A DNA stretch of 64,000 nt. Source: Vitrella brassicaformis CCMP3155 (taxonomy: Eukaryota; Protista; Chromerida). Made by a program: the position numbers and the translations under genes. Shown here in pieces: positions 5,678 to 57,286 of the stretch (positions within the stretch are counted from its first letter, which is position 1; each line of letters opens with the position of its first letter). The notes under the pieces were generated by a model that worked only from the letters and a program-made list of their open reading frames with translations, did no database searches and was not told the origin of the DNA. The stretch lies in NCBI GenBank assembly GCA_001179505.1, contig CDMY01000718.1:124001-188000 (forward strand), written 5' to 3'.

Positions 5678-6788
5678 TACCTGGCTTCTTGTTGTGTTGA
5701 CGTGTGTGATGGGCGTTCAGATGCCTCGATGGAGGGTGTGCAGAGGGGGTGGTCGCCTTGTGTGGTGTGGTGTGGTGTGGTGGTGGTGGGTTCTTGTCTT
5801 TGTCAAAGGCTCGGTGGAGTCGCACACAGGGGGGACAGAGTTGATGGTCCCGCTGTGTCGGCAGCCGTCCTCTGGGGGTGAGAACATCCCGCCCCACTGT
5901 GGCGTGGCATTCGTACCTGTCAGAGGTACGTATGCATATGCAGTGAGGTGGCTTTTGCTCTGTACTCTGTCTCGCCATTCGCCCGTACATACCCGATACG
6001 CCCGAAAGGCGTCCTCTTGAACACAAGTGAGCCACACCATCCAACACCACACCATCCAACACCACACCACACCGCACACACGGCCGTCTGTCATATTTTC
6101 TGTGCGTCTGTGTGTCAGGGCCTCGGTGAGGTGGTGTTCGGGGGGGAGATGTGCTGCGGGACGCTCCTGGCCATCTCAGCCGACCCGTGTCCAACTCGCC
6201 ACAAAGTAAGCCAGCAAGCAAGGAAGGCATTCGAGTCAACGCCGTCCACGTATCGTTCACTGCGTGCGTGAATGGTTGTGCAGGTGCCTCGATGGAGGTG
6301 TGTGGTGTGAGGGGGAAACGCCGATCCCGAAAGTGGGTGGATGTAAGCACGTATTTGATTGTCCCCTGAGCAAGTAAGCCCTCCACTGGCATACCCACAC
6401 CCACTGCACCCCCCTGTGCGTATGTGTGTGTGTGATGTGTGATGTGTGATGTGTGATGTGTGTGTTCCCATGTGTGTGTGTGTGTGTGGTAGTCTCTCGT
6501 TGGAGAGCGCTCTGTGCGTGGGGCTTTTGGTGAGCACTACCGGCGCCGCAGCCGAGCTCGTTGGATGGATGTCGTGCCGTCTTGGTGCCATGTGTCCCCG
6601 ATGGGGGACGGCAACAAGCCAGAGGATCCTTTGTGAACTCCCCCCCGAGACGGGGGCGGAAGGGCGCTATGGATCGCTGAGTGCCGATACTGCGCACCGT
6701 GTGGTAAGCCAAGGGGAGGGAGGGAGGGATGTGCACGTGTGGGTGTGCGTGTGAGCTGCCCTCCTCGCCATTCGTGTTGTCATGTGTG
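5678..6788 (+). repeat. Direct-repeat copy 2 of 3618-4701 (left-truncated copy of the TIR element)
   Basis: Near-identical to 3618-4701 over about 1.1 kb, differing by substitutions and microsatellite-unit indels. Retains the right-hand inverted repeat (6743-6771) but lacks the left one. Confidence 0.9.
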
Positions 6789-6959
6789 TGGTGCATTTTG
6801 TGTGTGCATTGAAGAGACCTCTTTTTGATGTGTCCGTCTTTGAATCAACCACGGTGGAGTCTGACGGTACAGTACCTCTCACATGTCACAGCAGACGAAG
6901 GATTGAGCTGGGTGGAATACCGAGCGGGAAGCTGTAAGAAGGCTGTATGATGGCTTAGA

Positions 6960-9895
6960 TCAGGGGAGGCCGTTCGCACACAAACATCAACAGACCGACG
7001 TCGTCAACAAAGACGCTCCTGGCTACTCTGGCCATTGATTCGGCCGGGCCCCCAGCCCAAGTCAATCCGTCCTCCCTGGCACATCTCCTAAGCCTGCTCA
7101 TCCCCGCTCATCTCATTCCCCATGATCCTTCTTTCCGCAGTCCCCCTCATCTTGTTTGTGTTGGTGCAGGGCGGCCGCCTCGTGCCACAACATGGCGGCC
7201 ATCTCCTGCACGCCGCCAGGCACGTGTACGGCAAGGCAATCGGAAGCCCTCTCGTCCACTCAAGCCGCCACCATCTGCGCATCCACTCGAGCAACGAGAC
7301 CGGCGTCTCGGCTGCTGTCAAGATGGAGGATTGGGTGAGGGAGAGTGCCGCAGTGCAGGCGCGCTTCATGGAGACGAGTCGGCGCTTCCATGCGCATAAG
7401 GTGCAGCCCTTCACAGCAATCAAGGAGCTGGGCAATGCAGCACTGGAGTCAGTTGACGAGGACTGGGCCATTGGGCAGGGATACGCCAACAAAGCCGGAG
7501 ACGGCAAGGCACTTCTCGCTGAGAGCAGTCTGCTAGAGGAGAAGGACCACTTCAACGTGGGGGATGAGGAGTATTGGGTCGCCTTCCAGTCTGCAGACGC
7601 CCACTCTGCGGCTCTGCGCAATTCTTTCACCCTCTTCTACCATGACAGGGACGTGCATGAAATCGCACTCAAGAAATGGTGAGACGCATGCACTGACACG
7701 GCTAAGTACTCATCTGTAGATGGCTTGGCTGCTCGATGCAGGTGGGAAGTGCAGAGGGATCAAGGAAAGGGCGAAGTGAAGGCTCACTTCAAGCGGAATG
7801 CCGCCGAGGCGAGAGAGGAGACAGGCATCTCGAAGGCAGAATTGGATGGCCTGCAGAAGAAGCAGTACGACGATAAGATGAACCGATGGTACAATAAGGC
7901 CCTCGGAGCTGTCAGCAACTTCACTAAGAAGGACCACGCCGATCACGATGAGAAAAGCCTGGCTTTTGCCGAAGCGCACATCGAATCGCTCATCGGCGTG
8001 TTCACCTTCGTCCTTCAAAAAGAGGCCATCAACGCCTACGAAAATGCGAATCCCCGAAGCATCGGCCCGCCCAAATTCACCGTGCCTCTGACAGGTGAAC
8101 AGGCCTAGCTTTTGCACGTGAGAGTGGAGCAAATGCGATCAAGAGCTGTGAATGTGTCAGACATTGCTCAAATGAGCCAAGGGCCCAACCAGGCCATGCT
8201 TACAGGTAAGACATGCACAAATTGGTCGATGGCTCATTAAAGAGTCAGGGAACATTGTGCTCTTCTGTAGGCTTCGCAGACATGCTCGTGCTCCTGCATT
8301 TGGCAGCGGTGAGCGGACGGAGACACGATACATGGCCTAGAAACAACGAGGGGCTGACCCTTTCTCTGCGTGTCTCGTCACATCAGAGTCGCTTCAACTG
8401 CGAGCCGGTCCACAAGAATGGGAGCCCCTCGGACAAGGATGTCACCCTGTGCATGGACAAGGGAGCCGACCACAACACCCTCTACACCATCAAGCGGCCA
8501 GACAACGCCACAGACACAAAGAGGCCGACCTTCCGACTGACATTTGTGATGGTCCGCAAGTTCAACAACGAGCCCCCATGCCATATCACATCACAGAACC
8601 ACCTGCCCGCTGACTACACGTGGCCGGAAGACCGCCTGAACATCGTCATGTGCGATAAGCACCTCAAGACATCCCCGAAGCCCCTTTTATTTCTCAAGAC
8701 TCAAGAGGGAAAACCCGTCTACAGACTGGCGACGAAGGATGGCCTGATGATGTATCCCAAGGTCCACGGTCTTGCAGAGAGCGTCGACCAGCTGCCCCCC
8801 GCCGACCAGTCACTGCTGAAACACGAGTGGGCTTTCTGTCCACTCTGCGATCTGCACATCCACCAGCAGGGTGCGGCGGCCCATGGTGGCAAGCCTGCAC
8901 ATCACAGCCTAATTCAGAGGGAGAGACGCGCGATTGTGCCGAGCCTTCATCACGGTAAAGAGACACAGTGAGACTACACGCCAATATCTCAGCATCTGCC
9001 CGTTCAGGTAACTCGTTCGGGCAGCTGTTGAGCATGACAGACGCACCCATAAGTACTCGGCAAACAAGATGGAGACACCACCAATATACATGGTCTATGT
9101 CGTTTTTGAGCAGAGTGCAAGGGGCACAGTGAGTGCGGCCCATCGCAAATGTGTCTCGCCATACCTGACAAAAAAGCCAAGACCTTCGATGCCAAGACGG
9201 CAGACTGGGAGCATTTCGACTGGTCCGGATTCCACCAGTGCTCACATCCCTCATCGTCGCCATGCTTCTGCCAACGTGAGCCGACGGCATCCGGGCTGTT
9301 TGACACATATGTGGCAGATGGGAGGAAAGTGACATCCGTGTGTGTGTGTGTGTGTGTGTCTGTGCTTGAGTGCAGGTGTACATCAGTGCAGCAAGGTGGC
9401 CTTGCCACTCATGGTTGGGTCGGAGGTTGATGACGACGGCGACAACTTTTGCGTCAGCGAAGTAAACGAAATAAACCCGACTACCAAGATGGCCAAGGTG
9501 CTTGAGTGCAAGCAGTGCCAGTATTCTGGCGGTCGCTACCCTGTTTGCGCAGCCCTGGTGAGCGGCTCATGCATCAGCCAGACCACCCAGTGAGTGTCTG
9601 TCTTGTGACATCGGTCCATCAGGGGGAGCAGTCATTAGGCACCCACTGGACGATCGAGGATGTGCCAGAGTCCGACCCCAAGAAGAGGGAGCTGTTTCAG
9701 TGGAGCAGCCGGGTGACAACACAGCGTGCTGTCGCTAAGGACGGCTGGTGGATGCCTTACCGTCTCCAGACACCGCCACAAGACCCCAACTCCCTAATGG
9801 CCTACCACCACCATCCTGATGCATTCATCGACTGCAAAAGTCCCATCCACCACCACCACCACCACCACCACAAGGGACACACACGCACAGCTTAG
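6960..9895 (+). CDS. Multi-exon hypothetical protein with a possible degenerate GHKL/MORC-like ATPase fold, a U1/matrin-like C2H2 finger and a C-terminal His tract
   Basis: ORFs 7122-7682, 7725-8108 and 8213-8971 join in frame via GT-AG introns (7679-7741, 8095-8270). Contains PFTAIKELGNAALES, CPLCDLHIHQQGAAAHGGKPAH (C-x2-C-x11-H-x5-H) and a terminal HHHHHHHH from a (CAC)n run. The gene is well supported; the domain calls are tentative and the start is uncertain. Confidence 0.6.
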
Positions 9896-47205: not shown

Positions 47206-48825
47206 TCACGCATGGCTGATAGGTATCTCTGCCCCCGTCGCCATGTCACGGATCTTCCTCAGCCTGACCTGCGCCCAGTTGAAGACGATGTACTCATCTC
47301 CAGTGGGCATGCCCGTCAGATGCACCGAGTCGTATCCTTGTGCTTTGAGGCTCGTGTGGGTGTACTGGCCGGCCCCCAAGAGGGCGGAAATCTTGAGGCT
47401 GTTGCCCAGGTACACTCGCGCCTCGATCATGCAGCCTGGACTGTGAGCCTTGCCCATGGTGGCCTGTTCGGACGCCGCACTGACGAGACACATCGACACA
47501 GGCGCAGATGAGACGGAGACAGCTGATGGTGACTGTATGGTTTCCGTGGTTTCGTCTGCTTACAAGTAGATGCCGCCCCCAACGATGCCCGTCGATCCCC
47601 GCATCATCTTCCGGCCCGAGGCGATGGCCTGAGCGGAGGCCGCGGATGTCTGATGGTAGAGTGTGATGCCCTTGGGGCACTCGGTGGCCCAGTGGTCGCT
47701 GTCCTTGTCTCCACACAGACGGCAGTAGTGCTTGTGCGCTTTCTTGCAGCCCTTGACACGACATTGCACCGTGCAGTTCCTGGTCAGGTGGTCGTTGATC
47801 TTGCCGCACCGTCGGCACTTGTGTTGGGAGTGGTCGATGCGGCAGCCTCGGACGCCGCACGACTGGCGACGGGGCGACGGGGAGCGGCGGCGGTGGCGAG
47901 GCGAATCACCGCCCTGCTGCTGGTGCTGCTGCCCCGATATGCAGAGGTTGTTGAAGAGCATGGCTGCGGCCAGCACACGCGGGTCACACACATGGGCGGC
48001 CTGAACGGGACATTCAAATCCACGGTGAGAGGCGGAGGAAGTGCCTGCAGTGGTGGTGCGTACCGGAGCTGCATTGGTGTTCTGGCTGGTCTGCTGATTG
48101 GTGTTCTGATCGGCCGTCTGGTCGGTGTTGTCCTGCTGGCCAGCTCCCGTGGCGGGCGCAGGGGCTGGCGGAGGCGGCTGCATCATTGACGTCAGCAGCT
48201 GTGTCGCAAGCAGCTGGAACAACACACACCATCGGCCAGCCTTCGCATCCACTGAGTGCATGCGCATGTGCGTACCTGCATTATCAGGGGCTGCATCATC
48301 GGGTTGGCGCCACCCGGGGAGCCAGACGAGCAGCCAGACGACCGACGAGACCTGCGGGACGATGTAGCCTGACAGCCACACACAACAGACAGCAGCACCA
48401 GCCATCAATGCATTGAATGCGGCCTTCCCATCCCCCCGTACCGTGCTATCGTCCGATTCGTTGCCGTCATCATCACTTCCGCCCGAGTCAGCGGCCGATC
48501 GCGCCCGACTCGACGAGGCCTTCCGCAGCTTGGGGCATGCAGACGAATAGTGATCAGAGTCCTGCACACAGACAAACACACAGAGAGGCGGTCGCGTCGC
48601 ATCATCGGCCTTGGTTCATGTCGGCACAGGACCGCGTCGCCGCAGGTTTTGCAGTAGTGCTTGCCCGTCTTCTGGCAGTTGGGGTGAGTGCAGGAAGGGA
48701 TCCTGCAGCCGCCGGAGCGACTCGGAGCCTGACAGACAGAGAAGGACGCAGATCAAGCAGCGAAGAAGATGTGTCCAGGATGCGCGAGCTGTCCGTCATG
48801 AGCCAATCTTCCACACCTGCGACAT
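47206..48825 (-). CDS. Triple zinc-module + GIG2/PARP-like ADP-ribosyltransferase ART-c
   Basis: Module 1: CRIPSCTHPNCQKTGKHYCKTCGDA|DSDHYSSACP. Low-complexity S/Q/P linker. Module 2: CGVRGCRIDHSQHKCRRCGKINDHLTRNC. Module 3: CRVKGCKKAHKHYCRLCGDKDSDHWATECP. ART domain: LYHQTS...GIVGGGIY|FA...QGYDSVHL...GDEYIVFNWAQV. The start (MSQ|AP.. at 48825) is a hand prediction. Confidence 0.85.
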
Positions 48826-49155
48826 TCGAGGATGCCGCCGCCTGCCAGACACCTCCAAAACGTCCGAAAAAAGGAAAGAGCTTTCCCTTGTGCGAGCTAG
48901 TCTCGTAAATCCTGTTCCTGCTGTATTCCTTTCCTGCCACTCAAGGAATACTTTCCTTCACTTGACGTCGAGGCTCGTTTGTGCGCTTCCTTTGTCGCCC
49001 TGGCGTCAAAGCTCGTTTCTGTGCTTTTTTTCCCATCTCGCCTCTTTCCCTTTGCCGGCCAAGGCAACAAGGACTACCACAACACGCCCCCTTCCTTCGT
49101 GCGTGCAAAGGACCGGGTTGAGCTTCTGGTAAGACTGGGCAACGGAGGCAGCAAC

Positions 49156-52100
49156 ATGACCTGCCGCGTCCCTGGCTGCAAGGAGGCTCACAAGGCCCAC
49201 TATTGCAAATGGTGCAAGAACCAGAACTCCAACCACTTCGCGCGTGACTGCTGGCATGGGCCCGGTGGACAGAGCGCGTCGACATACTCGGTACGCAGGC
49301 GACAGGATAGACAGACAGCGCCCTCAATGCCGTTCCCTCTTTCCTGCATGTGTTGTCTGCAGGGTGGCTCACCCGACAAGAGCCCACAGCGCAGCACATC
49401 ACGCGCCAGGGAGCGCAGCCGTTCAGGGCAGCCGAAGGGCCGCGTTGGTTGCCGCGTTCCAGGGTGCACTTTCCCCAACTGCCTCAAGACGGGACACCAC
49501 CATTGCAAGAATTGTGGCGACAAGGTAGCTACCAAGGACGCCCCATGGTGCTGATTCATCTGTTCCTTTGCCTGTGTTTGGCCTGGCCGCAGGATTCCGA
49601 TCACTTCTCGTCGGCATGCCCCAAGCTGCAGAAGCCCGGCGGGCAATACACGACCACCTCGCGCTTGGTGAGTGGCCATAATGCTAGAGGGCCTCGTTGC
49701 AGGACTGCATTTGGTGTGTCTGACGATGCTGTTTCGTTTCAGGTGCATTCGTCGCACCTCCTGTCGTCGCTCTATAACGGTTCACCTCACGCCGTCAAGA
49801 CAATCCTCGCCAACTATGCGACGGATTATGGGCGCGCAAAGGAGCCCAAGGACGTCACCGGTCTGCTGAGCACGCTGCAGTCGGCCATGGGCGGCCGAGG
49901 GGGCAGCTTCCATGGCATGGAGAGGGTGCTGACCTCTACCTTCATCAACGAGACGCTGCCCGTCCTGTGCGGCATCCTCTCCAAGGGCGACCTCAGCTTC
50001 CCCCTACAGCCGCCATCCAGCCACTCACACAGCGGCACGGAGGCACACATGACTGCCCGCCAGTGCTTTGCCCTCATCGGTGCGGGCTTCCTCTGTCTGC
50101 ACCAGCCCGGCGACGGCAGTCTCAACTTCGACCGCCTGTTCGACAACAGCACACCCTCTGGCAAGGCCAAGCTGCAGTGCTTCATCCACTACCTGGACAC
50201 CATGGCGCGGGCGATCAAGGAGGGCAACACCGCCGAGACGGAGCGTGTGGTCGTGTTCCAAGCCCTCAGCAGCCCCGAGGCGGGTATCCACGACTGGGCG
50301 ACATCGACCGCCCCACTGGTGGATGTGCGCTTCGTGCAAGGCACCCAAGCGTCCATCTTCGACGCGCCGGCCATCCGAGGCGACTTCGCCAATGCCCACA
50401 TCGCCGGCGGAACACTGGGAAAGGGTACGCACACAAAGACGAGAGACAGACAGGTTGATGTGCATCGATTTACATTTGTCTTTGCCGTCTCCGTCTCTCT
50501 CTCTCTCTCTCTGTGTGTGTGTCTGTGTGTCTGTGCCTGTTTGTGTGTGTGTGTGTCAGGTGCGGTGCAGGAGGAGATCTTGTTCTCAATTGAGCCGGAG
50601 TGCCTTCTCGCCCGCCACCTCTTCCCCAGAGCCATGCAGCCCACTGAGGCCTTCATGATCGTCGGCTCCAAGACGTTCAGCAAAACATCTGGCTACGGCC
50701 GCGAGACCCTCCGCTTCAGCGGCCCTGCCCACGACACGGCGGCCACGAGGCGCGTCGATGGCCATCCGGTTCTGAACAAGTACATCGTGGCCTTTGATGC
50801 GGTCAACTTCGGCAAGCACGGGAGTGATCAGCAGTACGACAAGACGCATGTGGTGCGAGATCTCAAGAAGGCACACACGGCATTCCATTGCAATGGCCTC
50901 ACGATCGTCGGAGGACTGCCCTTCGCGACGGGTGAGTGAGGCACACACAGATGGCCATCGTGTCTTGTCTGCACATCTGCGTCGGTTCGTGTGTCTGCGT
51001 GTGTCTGTCCAGGCAATTGGGGCTGTGGCGTGTTTGGTGGCGACCCCCAGTGGAAGCTTCTCATCCAGTGGTGCGCTGCGAGTCTCGCCGGCCGCCCGCT
51101 GCACTACTACCCGCGAGACGAGCGCAGCCTTATGGGCGCCGAGCGCTTCATCCACAGCCTGAAGGCCGCTGGGTGCGACACTGTGGGCGGGCTGGTCCAG
51201 CTGATGTGTGACAGGCGCACACAGAGGGCCATCGCGGGGCGGAATCGAATGTCGGCATTCGAGGCCATCAAAGCGATCGTCACGGACCGGAGCAGACCAC
51301 CCCCACCACCCGTGGTAAGCTGCCCCTCCATACTGTCTGCATCAATCTCATTGGGTTTCTGTGCGTTTGTGTGCCAGCCTCGCAGCTCACTGCCTGCATC
51401 CCACATGCAGCACTACTCCCCTTCCCCCCCCATGCAGCACTACTCGCCCCAGCTCGCATTGCCGGACCGGGCGGCAGCGCCACCTACGACAGGCCGAGAG
51501 GAAAGCCAAGGCGACACGGTGAGCCGTCTGCCAAACCTGAGATCCTGTGGTCATGCCTGTCTGTCTGTCCCCAGGCAGCCCTCGCTGCGTCTCCCATGTT
51601 GTCGGCCGTCACTGCAGACGAAAAGCATGCAAAAGATGACAATCCAAGAGAGGTCCGTCGAGACATGACACACACTTCTATGTGACCGATTGGTGTGTGT
51701 TGTGCGATGCTCTGGCTGCCAGGTTGGCTACGCTCCTCTGGTCGACACGACCGACAACGAGTCGTCGAGCATGGGTGCCTCGGATAGCGACGACAAAATG
51801 GACGTCGACGCGAGTGACGCGACCAACGCGGGCGCCACGGTGGAGGAGACCACACCCCTCCTCTCCATGCAAGACACGACCAGCCACACGTAAGGAGCAT
51901 GCACAGAGCCCATAGACGTGTGGTCAAGGCGTAGGTCTGGCTTCTCTGCGTGTCGTATGTTGTCAGAATTCATTACGTGTTCGAGTACGTGCCGAGGATG
52001 TATACCTTCCCCTCTGAGGTGGTACTCAAAGGCTCCTTCGACGGCTGGCTTGGCCATCACCCGATGTCTTGGTCGCCCAAGCACAGGTGCTTCGTCTACG

Positions 52101-52279
52101 GCATGCCGCTGCCCCCGGGCAGGTACATGTACAAGTTCATCGTGGATGACAGGTGGGTGTGTTCCAGCACGCAGCCAACAGGCGAAGATGGAGCTGGCAA
52201 TACCAACAATGTCGTCACCATCTCACTTGACCGCCAATGTCTGACCTGCGGGGTGGTACATGGGGGGAGGGGGTGCTAG
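49156..52279 (+). CDS. PARG: Poly(ADP-ribose) glycohydrolase PARG-1: 2 zinc modules + PARG catalytic domain + C-terminal CBM48/AMPK-beta-like glucan-binding domain
   Basis: MTCRVPGCKEAHKAHYCKWCKNQNSNHFARDCW; CRVPGCTFPNCLKTGHHHCKNCGDK|DSDHFSSACP. PARG signatures DFANAHIAGGTLGK|GAVQEEILF, SGYG, RDLKKA, AT|GNWGCGVFGGD. Final exon from 51967: SEVVLKGSFDGW...LPPGRYMYKFIVDDRW...NTNNVV. Confidence 0.92.
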
Positions 52280-52825
52280 GCGGGATGGCCTGTGTGCGGA
52301 TCGTAGCATGGGATCAGTTTGGATTCGTCGAATTGGGCTGGGAGACGTGCTGGCTGGGGGGTGCAGTGTGAAATCAGTGATGGCTCCGTAGGTGCGTGAG
52401 GATGGGCGGGTTCTTGTAACTAGATGGGCGAGCAGAGAGCGGGAGAAGAGGACGAACGGCATCAAATGTGACATGGCTGCTGTGCGTATCGTAGTGTGGG
52501 ATCAGTCGTAGAGTCGTAGATAGATGAGGGCGGATTCTCACAGGCAGTCGGTGCCCTCTGCGTTTTTTCTACGAGACACTTTGGTTAAATCCATGTTCGT
52601 GTGTGTCCCATGCATGGGCTGTGTCGTGTGATTTTGAATTGAAGTACGCGTAGTTTGACGCACTCTGAGTCTGTGCTTTTTGTAAGGCCCTTTGACTTGT
52701 GCATGTGAGGCTTTTCCATTAAGAGTGACGGCGAGCAGCGGACTAGACATCGAAAGTGAGCGCAACACAAAAGCGGCCGCATCAAGAATATATACATCAA
52801 TTCCTCCACCCGAACAGAGACACGC

Positions 52826-52979
52826 AGCATCAATCAAGTCACACGACCGTCAGCACCTCCACGTCACTGGCACTAAAATCTCGATGGCCACCGAACACTG
52901 CACACGCAGCAGGCCCCCTCGCCCCTTGATAGCCATCAGGCACATGACTCCTCTTCATGAAGTGACGACAGTAGCGCAC
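52826..52979 (-). pseudogene. 3' remnant of the TLDc gene (duplicate of 57668-57821)
   Basis: Near-identical DNA to the end of the TLDc CDS (VPDGYQGARGPAACAVFGGHRDFSASDVEVLTVV). The rest of the domain is absent. Confidence 0.8.
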
Positions 52980-53139
52980 TCCTGTTGATAATGGACCAGT
53001 GTATAGGTGTTTATGGCGTGTATACAGACTTGACATAAGACACTGATGTCTTTCCCTGACCGGTCCAAAGGCACAGAAACCTATCTTCTTGACTTCTCTG
53101 CACGCCTCATTGTCCACTTGCCTCCTTGCACCAAAACTT

Positions 53140-54141
53140 CTAGACGAAAAAGCTCATAAACACGCGCCCGATGAAGCCCAGAAGCTTGATGCAGCCAGGG
53201 AGCACGACCTCTGGGATGAGCTGCACAAACACAATCCCGACAACGAAGTCGAGAATCAAGATCTCGATGAATAAGTCGAAGATCAACATCTCGATGATCA
53301 CCTCGAGAATCACGCGCTCGACAAAGAACTCGAGCAGCACGCGCTGGACAAAGAATTTGCCGAGCTGCACGACGCCCTCCGTGACGGGGCGCGGTAGTCG
53401 TGTAGTGCCAACAAAGAAGATGAGACTCCTACAACACACACACAACACACACACACACACACACAAACATGACAGGCAGGATTTGACACTTGTTTGGTTG
53501 GCTGTCTGCTGCATTGGTCACTTGAATGCCGCGACTCCTCTCGGGGCCAATTCGCCTGCCTTTCCATGGAGAAATCGGTATAAGAGGCGAATCCTCTTGA
53601 TTAGGCGGGTTTCGCCGCGGTCGTCCTTGCAATCTCGATCATAAGCCTGACGCTTCTTGCTGTCTTTCAGTAGCTACACACCACGCACACAATCAATGCA
53701 CACCGCCACACACGCATGGCGTTGCTCACTTCGTATGCGGTGCGAAGGTCAATGAATTTCTCGTGCGCTCTTGGGTCACCGGGGTTCTTGTCGGGATGCA
53801 CTTGCTTGGACTTCTCGAAATACCCCTGCCATGATGACACAGACAGATAGACAGAAGATAGACCACACACCAAGAGGACTGACTGACTGACTGACCTGCT
53901 TCAGCTCTGCATCCGTGGCGTCCCTCGGCACCCCAAGAATGCGATAGCAGGAACAGGCGTTTCGACAGCCTCCTTGACCCAATGCAGGCGCCACTAGCAG
54001 GAGCGATAGCACAGAGAACAGACTCCGAAGAGAGCTGCATGCACACACATTGGTGCCTCGCGCGAAGCCTCAGGCGCCTGGGCAAGCGAGTCATACGTAC
54101 CTCGGACACTTGGACAAAAACGGCGTTGTATCACACGTCAT
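53140..54141 (-). CDS. J-domain (DnaJ/Hsp40) protein with N-terminal signal/anchor and hydrophobic C-terminus
   Basis: Spliced MTCDTTPFLSKCPS|SLRSLFSVLSLLLVAPALG...CYRILGVPRDATDAELKQ|GYFEKSKQVHPDKNPGDPRAHEKFIDLRTAYE|LLKDSKKRQAYD. HPD motif present. Confidence 0.88.
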
Positions 54142-54847
54142 TCGTTCGCTGCGCTGACAAACACGCAATCCGCTCTCCGATGCAGTACAGGTGTTTGTGT
54201 TGCAGTGCTACTGCAGTGTTGCAGTGATGCACACACAAGCAGGGGAAGAGAGAAATCGTCTCCTGGCGGGGAGCCCCTTTTGGGCCCGTGTATCGTGCAT
54301 ACCTGCCACATTGACGATACCGCTGCTTCCTGAACGCCGAGGAATGGGGGGTATCCAGAAAAGAACTGCAAGCTCGCAGATCTGAAGGGGGGGGGATGAG
54401 GGAGAGAAACCGCTGATGCTGAAGGGAGAGAACGAACGATGTCAAAACGTTGTGTTGCTGCGCCTTGTTTGCACCCTTGTTTGCAGACCCTTGGATCCTC
54501 AAAGATCTGCGCTGTGTTCGGCTCTTCAGAGGTCAAAGGCAGAGTATCGCTTCGATTGTGTCCAAGACGACACAAAGGCCAGCAGGCAACGAGAAGCAGT
54601 GACACATTCGCCGGGGATCCGATGCTCTCGAGGATAGGACAAGCCGACAGGATGCCACAGGAATACGGATCACAGGAATACATTGACAGGTATATGCCTG
54701 TTGCCTGTTCTGGTGCATTTCCTCAGCTGCTGAGCCGTCTTGGTCCGCTCGCCATCTCCCGCGCTTCATTCTTTGGTCCGCGAAGCGAAGAGAGCGAGAA
54801 GAAGCACAGAGGACCATACTTCCTGATCTGCCGTGCAAAACACAGCC

Positions 54848-57286
54848 ATGGTGAGAGCGACCCTACCAGCGTCCAGCGATCGGATTGCACCCCTCCACTC
54901 ATGTCTTGTCCCATCGTCCGTGTGTGCAGTGGTGGCTTGGCAAGACTTGCCGCGTCCCTGGCTGCACGGAGAAGCACAAGGCGCACTTCTGCAAATGGTG
55001 CAAGAACCAGAACTCCAACCACTTCGCGCGTGACTGCTGGTATGGGCCCGGTGGGAAAATGGCAGCGAACAACAAGCACTCGGTAAGCGAACGCACTCGC
55101 AGACCTACACCGCATTACTATGTGAGTCATGCCGCTCTACGTGTTGCCTCCCATGTACGCTGTAGGCTTTGCCTCGCCAGTCGCCGGCCCATCACGGCTT
55201 ACCTGCCACCGTCAAGGCCATCCTCGCTCACCTCGCGACGGATCACGGCCGCGCCAAAGAGCCCAAGGACGTCATTCGTCTGCTGGGCTGGCTGCAGTCG
55301 GCCATGGGCGGCCAGGGGATCTCATCGACCAGCTTCCGTGGCGTGGAGAAGGTACTGACCTCCACCTTTATCAACGAGACGCTGCCCGTCCTGTGCGACG
55401 TCCTGTCCAAGAGCGACCTCAGCTTCCCCCTGCAGCCGCCATCCAGCCACTCACACAGCGGCACGGAGGCACACATGACTGCCCGCGAGTGCTTCGTCCT
55501 CATCGGTGCGGGATTCCTCTGTCTGCACAAGCACGGCCACTCGGGCAGCCTCAACTTCGACCGCCCCTTCGACAACCACACACCGTCTGGCAAGGCCAAG
55601 CTGCAGTGCTTCATCCACTACCTGGACACCATGGCGCGGGCAATCAAGGAGGGCAACACCGCCGAGACAGAGCGTATGGTCATCTTCCGAGCCCTGCATA
55701 GCCCTGCGGCGGGGCTTCAGGAGTGGGCGAGGTCGACAACCCCTCTGATGGACGTGCACTTGATGAATGGGAAGGATGCGTCCATCTTCGACTCGAAGGG
55801 CATCAGGGGCGACCTTGCCAATGCCCACATCGGTGGCGGGACGCTGGGAAATGGTACGCAGACACAAACAGGCACAGACACGCACTGATCCATGTGGACC
55901 TGTCTGTGCCTTGCTGCGTCTGTGTGAGTATTTCAGGTGCGGTGCAGGAAGAGATTTTGTTTTCCATCGAGCCGGAGTGCCTCGTCGCCCGCCACCTCTT
56001 CCCCAGAGCCATGCAGCCCACAGAGGCCTTCATGATCGTCGGCTCCAAGACGTTCAGCCGCACATCGGGATACGGCCGCGAGACCCTGCGCTTCGCCGGC
56101 TCGGCACACGACACCGCCACCATGAAACATACCAACGGCCATTCCGTCCTGGGCAAGACCGTTGTGGCCTTTGATGCGGTCAACTTCGGCAAGCACGGGG
56201 GCGATCAGCAGTACGACGAGAGGTGCGTGCTGCGGGAGCTTAACAAGGCACACACGGCATTCCATTGCAATGGCCTCACGATCGTCGGAGGACTGCCCTT
56301 CGCGACGGGTGAGTGAGGCACACACAGAATGGCCATCGCTTCTTGTCTGCACACCTGCGTCGATTCGTGTGTCTGCGTGTGTGTCTGTCCAGGCAATTGG
56401 GGCTGCGGTGTGTTTGGTGGCGATCCCCAGTGGAAGTTTCTTATCCAGTGGTGCGCTGCCAGTCGGGCGGGTCGACGGCTGCACTACTACCCAAGAGACG
56501 AGAAGAGCCTCGTGGGCTCCAAGAACTTCATGCACGACCTGAAGAACGCTGGGTGCTCCACGGTGGGCCATTTGGTGCAGCTGATGTGCGATGGGCGCAC
56601 ACGTGGGGCGATCGGGCGTCGCGTGTCGGCCTTCGATGCCATCAGAGGAGCCCTCGCACAACAAACCAGACCAGCCTCTCGACAGATGGTACACCTACCA
56701 CCCTGCACACCTGTCGCCGTGTATCACCGTGGATGCTTTGGTGTGCGTGTGTGTGTGTGTCGCAGTCCCACAGTCTACCCCCCCGCAGGCAGCAGCCACG
56801 CAAACGCACACTGAGCAACTCGCCGCCAGCGCCACCCACGAGACGACACCACGGTGGGATAATCGACACCAACAAAGCGGAAGCCAAGGAAAGGGAGACG
56901 ACACTGCTCGCGTCTGCACAGAAGAGTGGCGACAGCAAGTAAGCACCCACAGAGACGCACACACCGCAGAGAGGGGAGCGAACGGATCCTGGCCGTGTCT
57001 GTGTGCCTATGGTGGTGGTGTCAGGATCGATCACATTTTCCAGTACGTACCGGTGAAGCGCACTCGTCCCTCTGAGGTGTTGCTGGCCGGATCCTTCGAC
57101 GGCTGGCACGGCCGCTACCCGATGTTCTGGTCTGCCGAGCACAACTCCTTCGTGCTGCCCATGCCGCTGCCTGCCGGCAGACACATGTACAAGTTCATCG
57201 TCGATGGCGTCTGGACGTGTGCGGGCCGGCAGCCAAGTGCTCGAGATTCGTCTAACAATCTCAACAATGTGGTGAACGTCGGATAG
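54848..57286 (+). CDS. PARG: Poly(ADP-ribose) glycohydrolase PARG-2: 1 zinc module + PARG catalytic domain + C-terminal CBM48-like domain
   Basis: M|WWLGKTCRVPGCTEKHKAHFCKWCKNQNSNHFARDCW; DLANAHIGGGTLGN|GAVQEEILF (GGG-x6-QEE); SGYG; RELNKA; GNWGCGVFGGD. Last exon from 57025: SEVLLAGSFDGW...LPAGRHMYKFIVDGVW...NLNNVVNVG*. Confidence 0.92.

Follow-up and report, generated by a model that had tools for sequence, protein, structure and literature searches.

How does a gene for a writer of ADP-ribosylation come to stand head to head with a gene for an eraser, with the same zinc module built into both proteins, and what may keep such a pair together? This question is raised by a locus of Vitrella brassicaformis CCMP3155, where ART-c, the gene of a putative ADP-ribosyltransferase (ART), and PARG-1, the gene of a predicted poly(ADP-ribose) glycohydrolase (PARG), diverge from a short spacer. 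The window, namely the whole stretch of 64,000 nucleotides analysed here, is C718:124001-188000 (contig CDMY01000718.1) and its positions are counted from its first letter; the genome-wide searches covered 72.7 Mb in 1064 contigs. Our analysis leads to the reading, which we consider probable, that the pair is one copy of a multiplied ART/PARG two-gene cassette whose inverted long modules exchange sequence, and whose shared module and divergent order would serve a common target and co-regulation.

The gene models on which this rests can be given exactly. ART-c is CEM31362.1 (P0001; 392 aa, minus strand), which bears the UniRef name "CCHC-type domain-containing protein", and PARG-1 is CEM31363.1 (P0005; 808 aa, plus strand), named poly(ADP-ribose) glycohydrolase. 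With an exact-match splice mapper that allows GT/GC-AG introns, 7 coding exons of ART-c and 10 of PARG-1 rebuild the two deposited proteins with every residue identical, the end of PARG-1 exon 3 being corrected to 49667. The start codons lie on opposite strands, at 48825 (minus) and 49156 (plus), with exactly 330 bp between them, just as the original prediction had estimated.

47206..48825, minus strand: ART-c gene, exons 48825-48817, 48728-48633, 48561-48442, 48368-48276, 48213-48064, 48000-47564 and 47479-47206 (including the stop codon).
49156..52279, plus strand: PARG-1 gene, exons 1-5 at 49156-49290, 49363-49524, 49593-49667, 49743-50424 and 50560-50931; exons 6-10 at 51013-51314, 51378-51518, 51575-51652, 51723-51889 and 51967-52279.

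Both proteins carry a module of 29-34 residues with the pattern C-x-V-x-G-C ... H/C ... H-x-C-x2-C-x5-6-H-x4-C, which offers eight candidate metal ligands and, judging from this pattern, presumably binds two zinc ions. The two proteins of the cassette have one to three copies each, and the window holds eight in total (ART-a 1, ART-b 1, ART-c 3, PARG-1 2, PARG-2 1). A long variant with a T-x-P-N-C-x-K-T-G insert occurs in the window in two of them only, module 1 of ART-c and module 2 of PARG-1, and these are the copies that had been picked out as the same variant at the DNA level. In fact 25 of 29 positions are identical between their 29-mers (48664-48692, minus; 49465-49493, plus), and a degenerate pattern spanning both has these two sites alone in the 64-kb window, where 0 are expected from 100 shuffles. 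A phase-0 GT-AG intron, of 71 nt in ART-c and 68 nt in PARG-1, separates CGD[AK] from DSDH in each of the two modules, and behind it both run on as ..SSACPKL, so that these points of the original prediction stand as well. After splicing, the long modules regain the ligand spacing of the intron-less copies. The parts of the two long modules, together with the inverted repeat that they form around the spacer, are as follows; the letters B, D and E refer to the paralogous cassettes described below.

48633..48728, minus strand: first half of ART-c module 1 (CRIPSC..CGDA), a phase 0-0 exon.
48562..48632, minus strand: intron of ART-c module 1, 71 nt, phase 0, before DSDH, homologous to the introns of ART-B, ART-D and ART-E module 1.
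48442..48561, minus strand: second half of ART-c module 1, DSDHYSSACPKLRK.., a phase 0-0 exon.
49450..49524, plus strand: first half of PARG-1 module 2 (CRVPGC..CGDK), PARG-type, standing with PARG modules in the DNA tree.
49525..49592, plus strand: intron of PARG-1 module 2, 68 nt, phase 0, before DSDH, aligning with the ART-E module 1 intron.
49593..49667, plus strand: second half of PARG-1 module 2, DSDHFSSACPKLQK.., ART-type, a phase 0-0 exon.
48517-48576 and 49578-49637: arms of a 60-nt inverted repeat, 80% complementary, each arm consisting of the last 15 nt of the module intron and of second-half exon.

The pair in the window is not the only one. A genome search with PARG and ART exons found five loci where an ART-c-type gene adjoins a PARG of the same subfamily, which answers the question, posed with the original prediction, whether further ART/PARG loci are paired: four are head-to-head cassettes and one is rearranged.

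Cassette A: this window, head-to-head, start codons 330 bp apart.
Cassette B: C718:237-241k, head-to-head, start codons about 323 bp apart.
Cassette C: C718:53-56k, head-to-head, start codons about 750 bp apart.
Cassette E: C238:96-100k, head-to-head, start codons about 370 bp apart.
Cassette D: C718:229-232k, tandem order, rearranged.

DNA homology between the cassettes extends from just past the ART stop codon to the CBM48 exon of the PARG gene, and the flanks are unrelated; the copied unit is the two genes only. Identity between cassettes A and B forms a mosaic, with 94-100% in the 5' half of the ART gene, 46-62% in the PARG module region and 86-99% in the PARG catalytic exons, which points to repeated gene conversion. 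For both genes the ratio of nonsynonymous to synonymous substitution rates (dN/dS) is 0.26-0.43 at a dS of 0.2-0.75, indicating moderate constraint and purifying selection, and both genes of cassette C are annotated as intact (P0164, P0009). In single-exon trees (PARG exon 5 and the last ART exon) the branching was largely unresolved, so the tree shapes could not be matched for co-duplication.

How the two long modules are related becomes clearer when all copies in the genome are compared. The original prediction expected the pair in the window to be sisters; within the window this is trivially true, and genome-wide it fails, as a protein tree of 26 modules joins ART-c module 1 to module 1 of ART-B and ART-E (support 95/88) and gives PARG-1 module 2 no resolved place among the long modules. 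ART-B, ART-D and ART-E have the split form as well, in their module 1, and so does PARG-E in its module 2, which brings the modules with this intron position to four in ARTs and two in PARGs; the positional counterparts of PARG-1 module 2 in PARG-B and PARG-D are intron-less. When the two halves of PARG-1 module 2 are taken separately, the first half has 75-76% DNA identity to PARG modules as against 69% to ART-c and groups with PARG, while the second half has 82-84% identity to the second halves of ART module 1 as against 49-56% to all other PARG modules, and a long branch (support 94/96) places it on the ART side. Placing this second half with its positional counterparts is rejected by the approximately unbiased (AU) test (p 0.004 and 0.016); a grouping with the whole set of PARG modules agreed with the free tree, a comparison that was ill-posed and has been replaced by the positional-counterpart tests. 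Moreover, the intron of PARG-1 module 2 aligns with that of ART-E module 1 at z 5.0, whereas unrelated introns of these two genes reach z 0.4-2.4. By these comparisons PARG-1 module 2 is chimeric, its first half being of the PARG type and its second half of the ART type. A reverse chimera is seen in ART-D module 1, whose first half and upstream linker are like those of PARG-E module 2 (91%), and whose intron and second half are ART-type.

Taken together, the half-module identities and trees, the intron alignment and the ART-D chimera indicate at least two transfers of sequence at this intron between writer and eraser genes, and an ongoing, family-wide exchange of module exons between the two kinds of genes is supported by the sequences. 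The small 5' exons concerned are all of phase 0-0 according to the exon tables, so that they can be moved without breaking the reading frame. What had been proposed as exon shuffling or inverted duplication between the two copies in the window thus survives as exchange between writer and eraser genes, and has to be given up as a single event joining just these two copies.

Besides the modules, the spacer between the two start codons merits attention.

48826..49155, no strand: spacer between the start codons, 330 bp, candidate shared promoter, characterised by alignment with cassettes B and E and by motif scan.
48890-48917, 48964-48984, 49002-49024 and 49054-49072, no strand: spacer blocks kept in paralogous cassettes.

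The spacer is largely conserved between cassettes A and B, with short identical blocks kept in E, and cassettes B, C and E repeat the head-to-head spacing of the start codons. A bidirectional promoter seems plausible in view of this geometry, which four cassettes conserve, and of the spacer blocks. A scan of the spacer for sigma-70 promoters and terminators found nothing; being a bacterial scan, it is not applicable to a eukaryote.

The identity of the two enzymes is supported by their catalytic regions, which are listed here with the remaining modules.

47209..47661, minus strand: ART-c catalytic domain, with H (LYHQT), Y (GIYFA) and E (DEYIVF).
47677..47859, minus strand: ART-c modules 2 (47773-47859) and 3 (47677-47763), short variant, intron-less.
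49162..49251, plus strand: PARG-1 module 1, short variant.
49743..51314, plus strand: PARG catalytic region, exons 4-6, with ..AGGTLGKGAVQEE.. and GNWGCGVFGGD, recognised by Pfam and by solved structures.
51967..52279, plus strand: exon of the PARG-1 C-terminal CBM48 (AMPK-beta-like), Pfam AMPK1_CBM 8e-20, in frame in P0005.

PARG-1 passes both catalytic Pfam models, PARG_cat_N (PF20811; 4e-9, 37.2 bits against a cut-off of 25.6) and PARG_cat_C (PF05028; 2e-25 and 2e-13, or 90.2 and 51 bits, on separate exons against a cut-off of 26.3), and its catalytic region aligns with solved PARG structures with a best E-value of 4e-39. It keeps QEE and GNWGCGVFGGD, in keeping with the PARG signature of GGG-X6-8-QEE and GNWGCGxFGGD, and on such evidence is predicted to be a canonical PARG with a C-terminal CBM48. 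As for ART-c, its score against Pfam PF00644 is 13.5 bits and that of ART-D 24.1, both below the cut-off of 26.7, which a metagenomic relative (P0004) passes with 27.3 bits. The H-Y-E triad is invariant in 8 aligned sequences of paralogs and metagenomic relatives (YHQT, GIYFA, and the Glu of DEYIVF or E(Y/I/V)VV), the GIYFA motif of ART-c being interrupted by a phase-2 intron at 47480-47563. An AlphaFold2 model of ART-c residues 255-392, with a mean predicted local distance difference test score (pLDDT) of 83.8, matches the ART domains of PARP4, PARP2, PARP1 and PARP3 with a Foldseek probability of 1.0 and template modelling (TM) scores of 0.62-0.67; according to the model, ART-c has a minimal PARP-type (H-Y-E) ART fold. 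A comparison of ART-a with PDB sequences gave no match. In a profile search the wider ART family comprises 2310 cluster representatives, mostly of 100-300 aa; its named relatives are protist proteins called "PARP catalytic domain-containing", and the protein-atlas neighbours are small PARP-domain proteins of chordates and Nucleocytoviricota. Among the minimal-ART relatives, P0049 and P0088 show fusion either to an AAA_11/AAA_12 helicase or to six repeats of PBZ, a zinc finger that binds poly(ADP-ribose).

The module itself is harder to classify. It has no Pfam family in the Pfam scan, and its second half matches zf-CCHC (PF00098) with E-values of 0.24-1.4, below the cut-off. This half resembles a CCHC knuckle; its spacing, C-x2-C-x5-6-H-x4-C, following a C-x4-C..H/C..H half, departs from the C-x2-C-x4-H-x4-C that a CCHC zinc knuckle needs. 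A model of a tandem of two modules has a pLDDT of 81, and its top Foldseek matches in the PDB are the knuckles of Lin28 and HIV NCp7, with insignificant E-values of at least 1.8; a wide VIA-align search returned no match to the module fold at Z >= 2, and the protein atlas gave no usable module match. A module profile has 32 matches in the genome, of which 28 lie in ART or PARG loci or in an ART-derived remnant. The other matches are on contigs without an ART or PARG match (C291:103164-103253, C431:2904-2960, C515:40488-40577, C702:21957-22013). P0003 (C718:18.8-19.6k), a protein of 234 aa with a long module, an ART-c-like low-complexity linker and a copy of module 2 and with no ART domain, is a remnant of an ART or else a protein with modules only. 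In cassette E two substitutions may mark weakened sites: in ART-E module 3 the second Cys of C-x2-C is replaced by Ser (CRLSG; L051:2615-2704), and in the PARG-E loop GNWGCGVFGGD the GGD has become GRD (L051:6077-6094).

From these results a mechanism can be proposed. The cassette consists of a minimal PARP-type ART and a canonical PARG with CBM48, diverging from a spacer of 0.3-0.75 kb. The long split module, being module 1 in the ART and module 2 in the PARG, probably arose by duplication at the DNA level with the intron carried along, and left inverted copies flanking the spacer. Sequence may go on being swapped among such copies, and among the paralogous cassettes, by gene conversion or recombination, with the ART-type second half of PARG-1 module 2 and the PARG-type first half of ART-D module 1 as the probable outcome. 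The shared module would direct writer and eraser to the same target, possibly a single-stranded nucleic acid, which is a reasonable guess considering the knuckle-like half of the module. The divergent arrangement would co-regulate both genes and so provide a reversible ADP-ribosylation switch, and CBM48, which the ART does not have, would give the PARG a second localisation directed to glucan or to a partner. The rapid duplication, conversion and decay of the cassettes suggest a role in stress or conflict rather than in housekeeping.

Such decay, and the loss or absence of partners, can be followed at several loci. In cassette B (L048:2150-6100, C718:237.6-241.6k) the reading frame of ART-B is interrupted by a stop codon immediately ahead of module 2, ..SPRR*SCGVRGC.., and that of PARG-B is shifted towards the end of exon 5, with P0104 and P0006 truncated to match in their deposited form; judging from its reading frames, this cassette looks like one in decay. 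At locus D (L050:2900-6600, C718:228.4-232.1k) PARG and ART lie on the same strand and PARG-D has a stop inside GGDPQ-KL; the P0002 model joins C-terminal exons of PARG-D to ART-D, and in P0008 a gene from further upstream, unrelated to PARG-D, is fused with it. Neither PARG-2 nor the PARG at C718:95k has an ART remnant nearby. The region upstream of PARG-2 (window 54420-55054) is 78% homologous to the cassette C spacer (L049:5419-6048), and this homology ends about 235 bp before the ART-C start; as no ART remnant was found in 52300-54940, PARG-2 was thus duplicated without its ART. The PARG at C718:95k has two CBM48-like exons behind it instead of one (L052:5895-6152 and 6719-6994; C718:96.9-98.0k), and within the 9 kb examined at this locus no zinc module was found upstream of it. 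Some members of the ART-c family form head-to-head ART/ART pairs (C238:60.5k/61.6k, C801:1.9k/3.0k, and L056:1450-2979 on a metagenomic contig). On this metagenomic contig, of 3360 bp and from JGI, the divergent neighbour of an ART with the same zinc module is a second ART with a different Cys-rich finger, not a PARG.

Several observations weigh against the cassette reading or narrow it. Across the Pfam, Foldseek and VIA-align searches the module has no recognised fold or ligand, and the presence of CBM48 on PARG-1 only speaks against a fully identical targeting of the two proteins. In the GGG motif of PARG-1 the first Gly is replaced by Ala (IAGGTLGKGAVQEE, AGG), whereas its paralogs and the best-matching solved PARG have GGG. 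The half-module trees have 75 and 45 columns, the second-half result resting on 45, and their groups were named after the identities had been seen; forcing the first half of PARG-1 module 2 to the ARTs costs 9.25 log-likelihood units and is not rejected (p 0.095). The splicing of ART-c and PARG-1 is based on the deposited annotation and on conservation. Divergent neighbours are expected by chance for about a quarter of adjacent gene pairs, and the five paired loci go back to one ancestral event followed by duplication, not to five independent events. One alternative is a neutral origin, in which ART and PARG became neighbours by chance, were copied by segmental duplication and had their modules homogenised by conversion, with no functional coupling. 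The non-coding DNA between cassettes can be aligned at 73-87%, so that the copies are fairly young; the nonsense codon and frameshift of cassette B, the scrambling of cassette D and the partnerless state of PARG-2 and of the PARG at C718:95k would also agree with it. Nevertheless we regard a neutral by-product as unlikely, for the copied unit stops exactly at both genes in every cassette, both genes are under the purifying selection given above, short spacer blocks are identical even in the more diverged cassette E, and the concentration of the module in ART and PARG loci is hard to explain unless the enzymes share a task.

A tighter coupling than the cassette reading assumes was suggested by the original prediction, which spoke of toxin/antitoxin-like co-expression. 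In the strict form, modelled on DarT-DarG, the ART would be harmful alone, the adjacent PARG would be its obligatory antidote, and a shared promoter would match their dosage. A writer adjoins an eraser head-to-head in four cassettes, and copies are gained and lost rapidly, as in conflict genes. Strict dependence in cis is nevertheless countered by the partnerless PARGs and by writers without a working neighbour: ART-D looks intact beside a PARG-D with an in-frame stop, in the 7 kb examined at the C1064 ART no PARG is present, and about a dozen further loci with ARTs of the ART-c family have no PARG match nearby. Other PARG paralogs could act in trans, which would make pairing in cis needless. 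Moreover, canonical PARGs leave the protein-proximal ADP-ribose in place, so that a PARG would be an incomplete antidote to a mono-ART. On balance, then, we find an obligatory toxin and antidote quite improbable. No better placed is a looser version, a eukaryotic analogue of DarT-DarG serving as a defence or conflict cassette, where the module would guide the ART onto single-stranded nucleic acid of viruses or mobile elements, a co-transcribed PARG guided in the same way would reset the modification or protect self, and swaps of the guide exon would diversify the system. An objection of another kind concerns the exchange itself, since the shared intron might be ancestral to the long module, inherited vertically and secondarily lost from some of them, without any passage of sequence from ART to PARG or back. 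PARG-E module 2, where a PARG-type second half follows an intron at that position, and the absence of the intron from module 2 of PARG-B and PARG-D can be read in this way. But vertical inheritance leaves both the ART-like second half of PARG-1 module 2 and the mixed ART-D module 1 unexplained, and the AU test rejects the grouping of the former with its positional counterparts; this explanation is already weakened, and we assign it very little probability. The multiplied, sequence-exchanging cassette thus remains the reading that we prefer.

Some further observations concern the two genes themselves. Intron 4 of PARG-1 is largely a (CT)n(GT)n microsatellite (window 50473-50563). In three DNA runs the unitig depth, summed across module exons and conserved PARG exons (window 47268-48739 and 49844-51315), is 2-4x that of the flanks, with many variant unitigs, as would fit the presence of near-identical paralogs at other places of the genome. 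Contigs from the sequencing runs span the introns and the spacer and contain no splice junctions; one small run, presumed to be RNA, hardly reaches the locus. Genome-derived records are the only members of the 90%-identity clusters of P0001 and P0005, and MMETSP transcript records were seen only for PARG-2 (P0007) and for an ART-D-like fragment (P0165).

It is then of interest how the locus compares with known systems. With the eukaryotic PARP and PARG enzymes it shares the H-Y-E PARP-type ART fold and a PARG with helical and macro parts and QEE. However, the Vitrella ART domain, with about 125 residues, has no helical regulatory, WGR or BRCT parts and stays under the Pfam PARP cut-off, and the Vitrella genes are physically paired, share a private zinc module, have been multiplied as a unit and carry CBM48 on the PARG. 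In the bacterial DarT-DarG system, an ART toxin with a macrodomain antitoxin, and in similar operons, an ADP-ribosyl writer and an eraser likewise lie side by side. DarT acts on nucleic acid, a target that a knuckle-like and possibly nucleic-acid-binding module would fit, which we take as a lead only. In contrast to DarT-DarG, the Vitrella locus is eukaryotic, has introns and is transcribed divergently rather than as an operon, its eraser is a PARG and not a DarG-type macrodomain, and writer and eraser do not strictly co-occur. In human, PARP9 and DTX3L form a head-to-head pair, and PARP14 holds a writer and a macrodomain eraser in one protein. In these cases too, components of ADP-ribosylation are linked by bidirectional arrangement or by fusion, but the partner proteins are others, and there is no common module, no multiplication as a cassette and no exon exchange between writer and eraser. 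Minimal PARP-domain proteins of 100-250 aa, namely Gig2-like interferon-induced proteins of fish and those of giant viruses and protists, have a similarly small PARP catalytic domain, which in Vitrella comes with the private zinc module and with a PARG as partner. An ART-associated Crinkler-like protein (PMC12957317) was considered and is unrelated. Our literature searches, only partly specific to Vitrella, returned no title or abstract describing such an arrangement.

In eukaryotes, work on ADP-ribosylation has usually dealt with writer and eraser genes that are unlinked; at the ART/PARG locus we see the two paired in a form that is new in being eukaryotic and cassette-like. Genes of opposite function that are paired, carry the same otherwise unplaced module, are copied together and swap exons make a natural system for asking how a PARP-like enzyme and a PARG come to have one target. 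The module provides a concrete and testable candidate for a new zinc finger linked to ADP-ribosylation, and the locus offers a clean example of exon-level recombination between functionally opposed genes.

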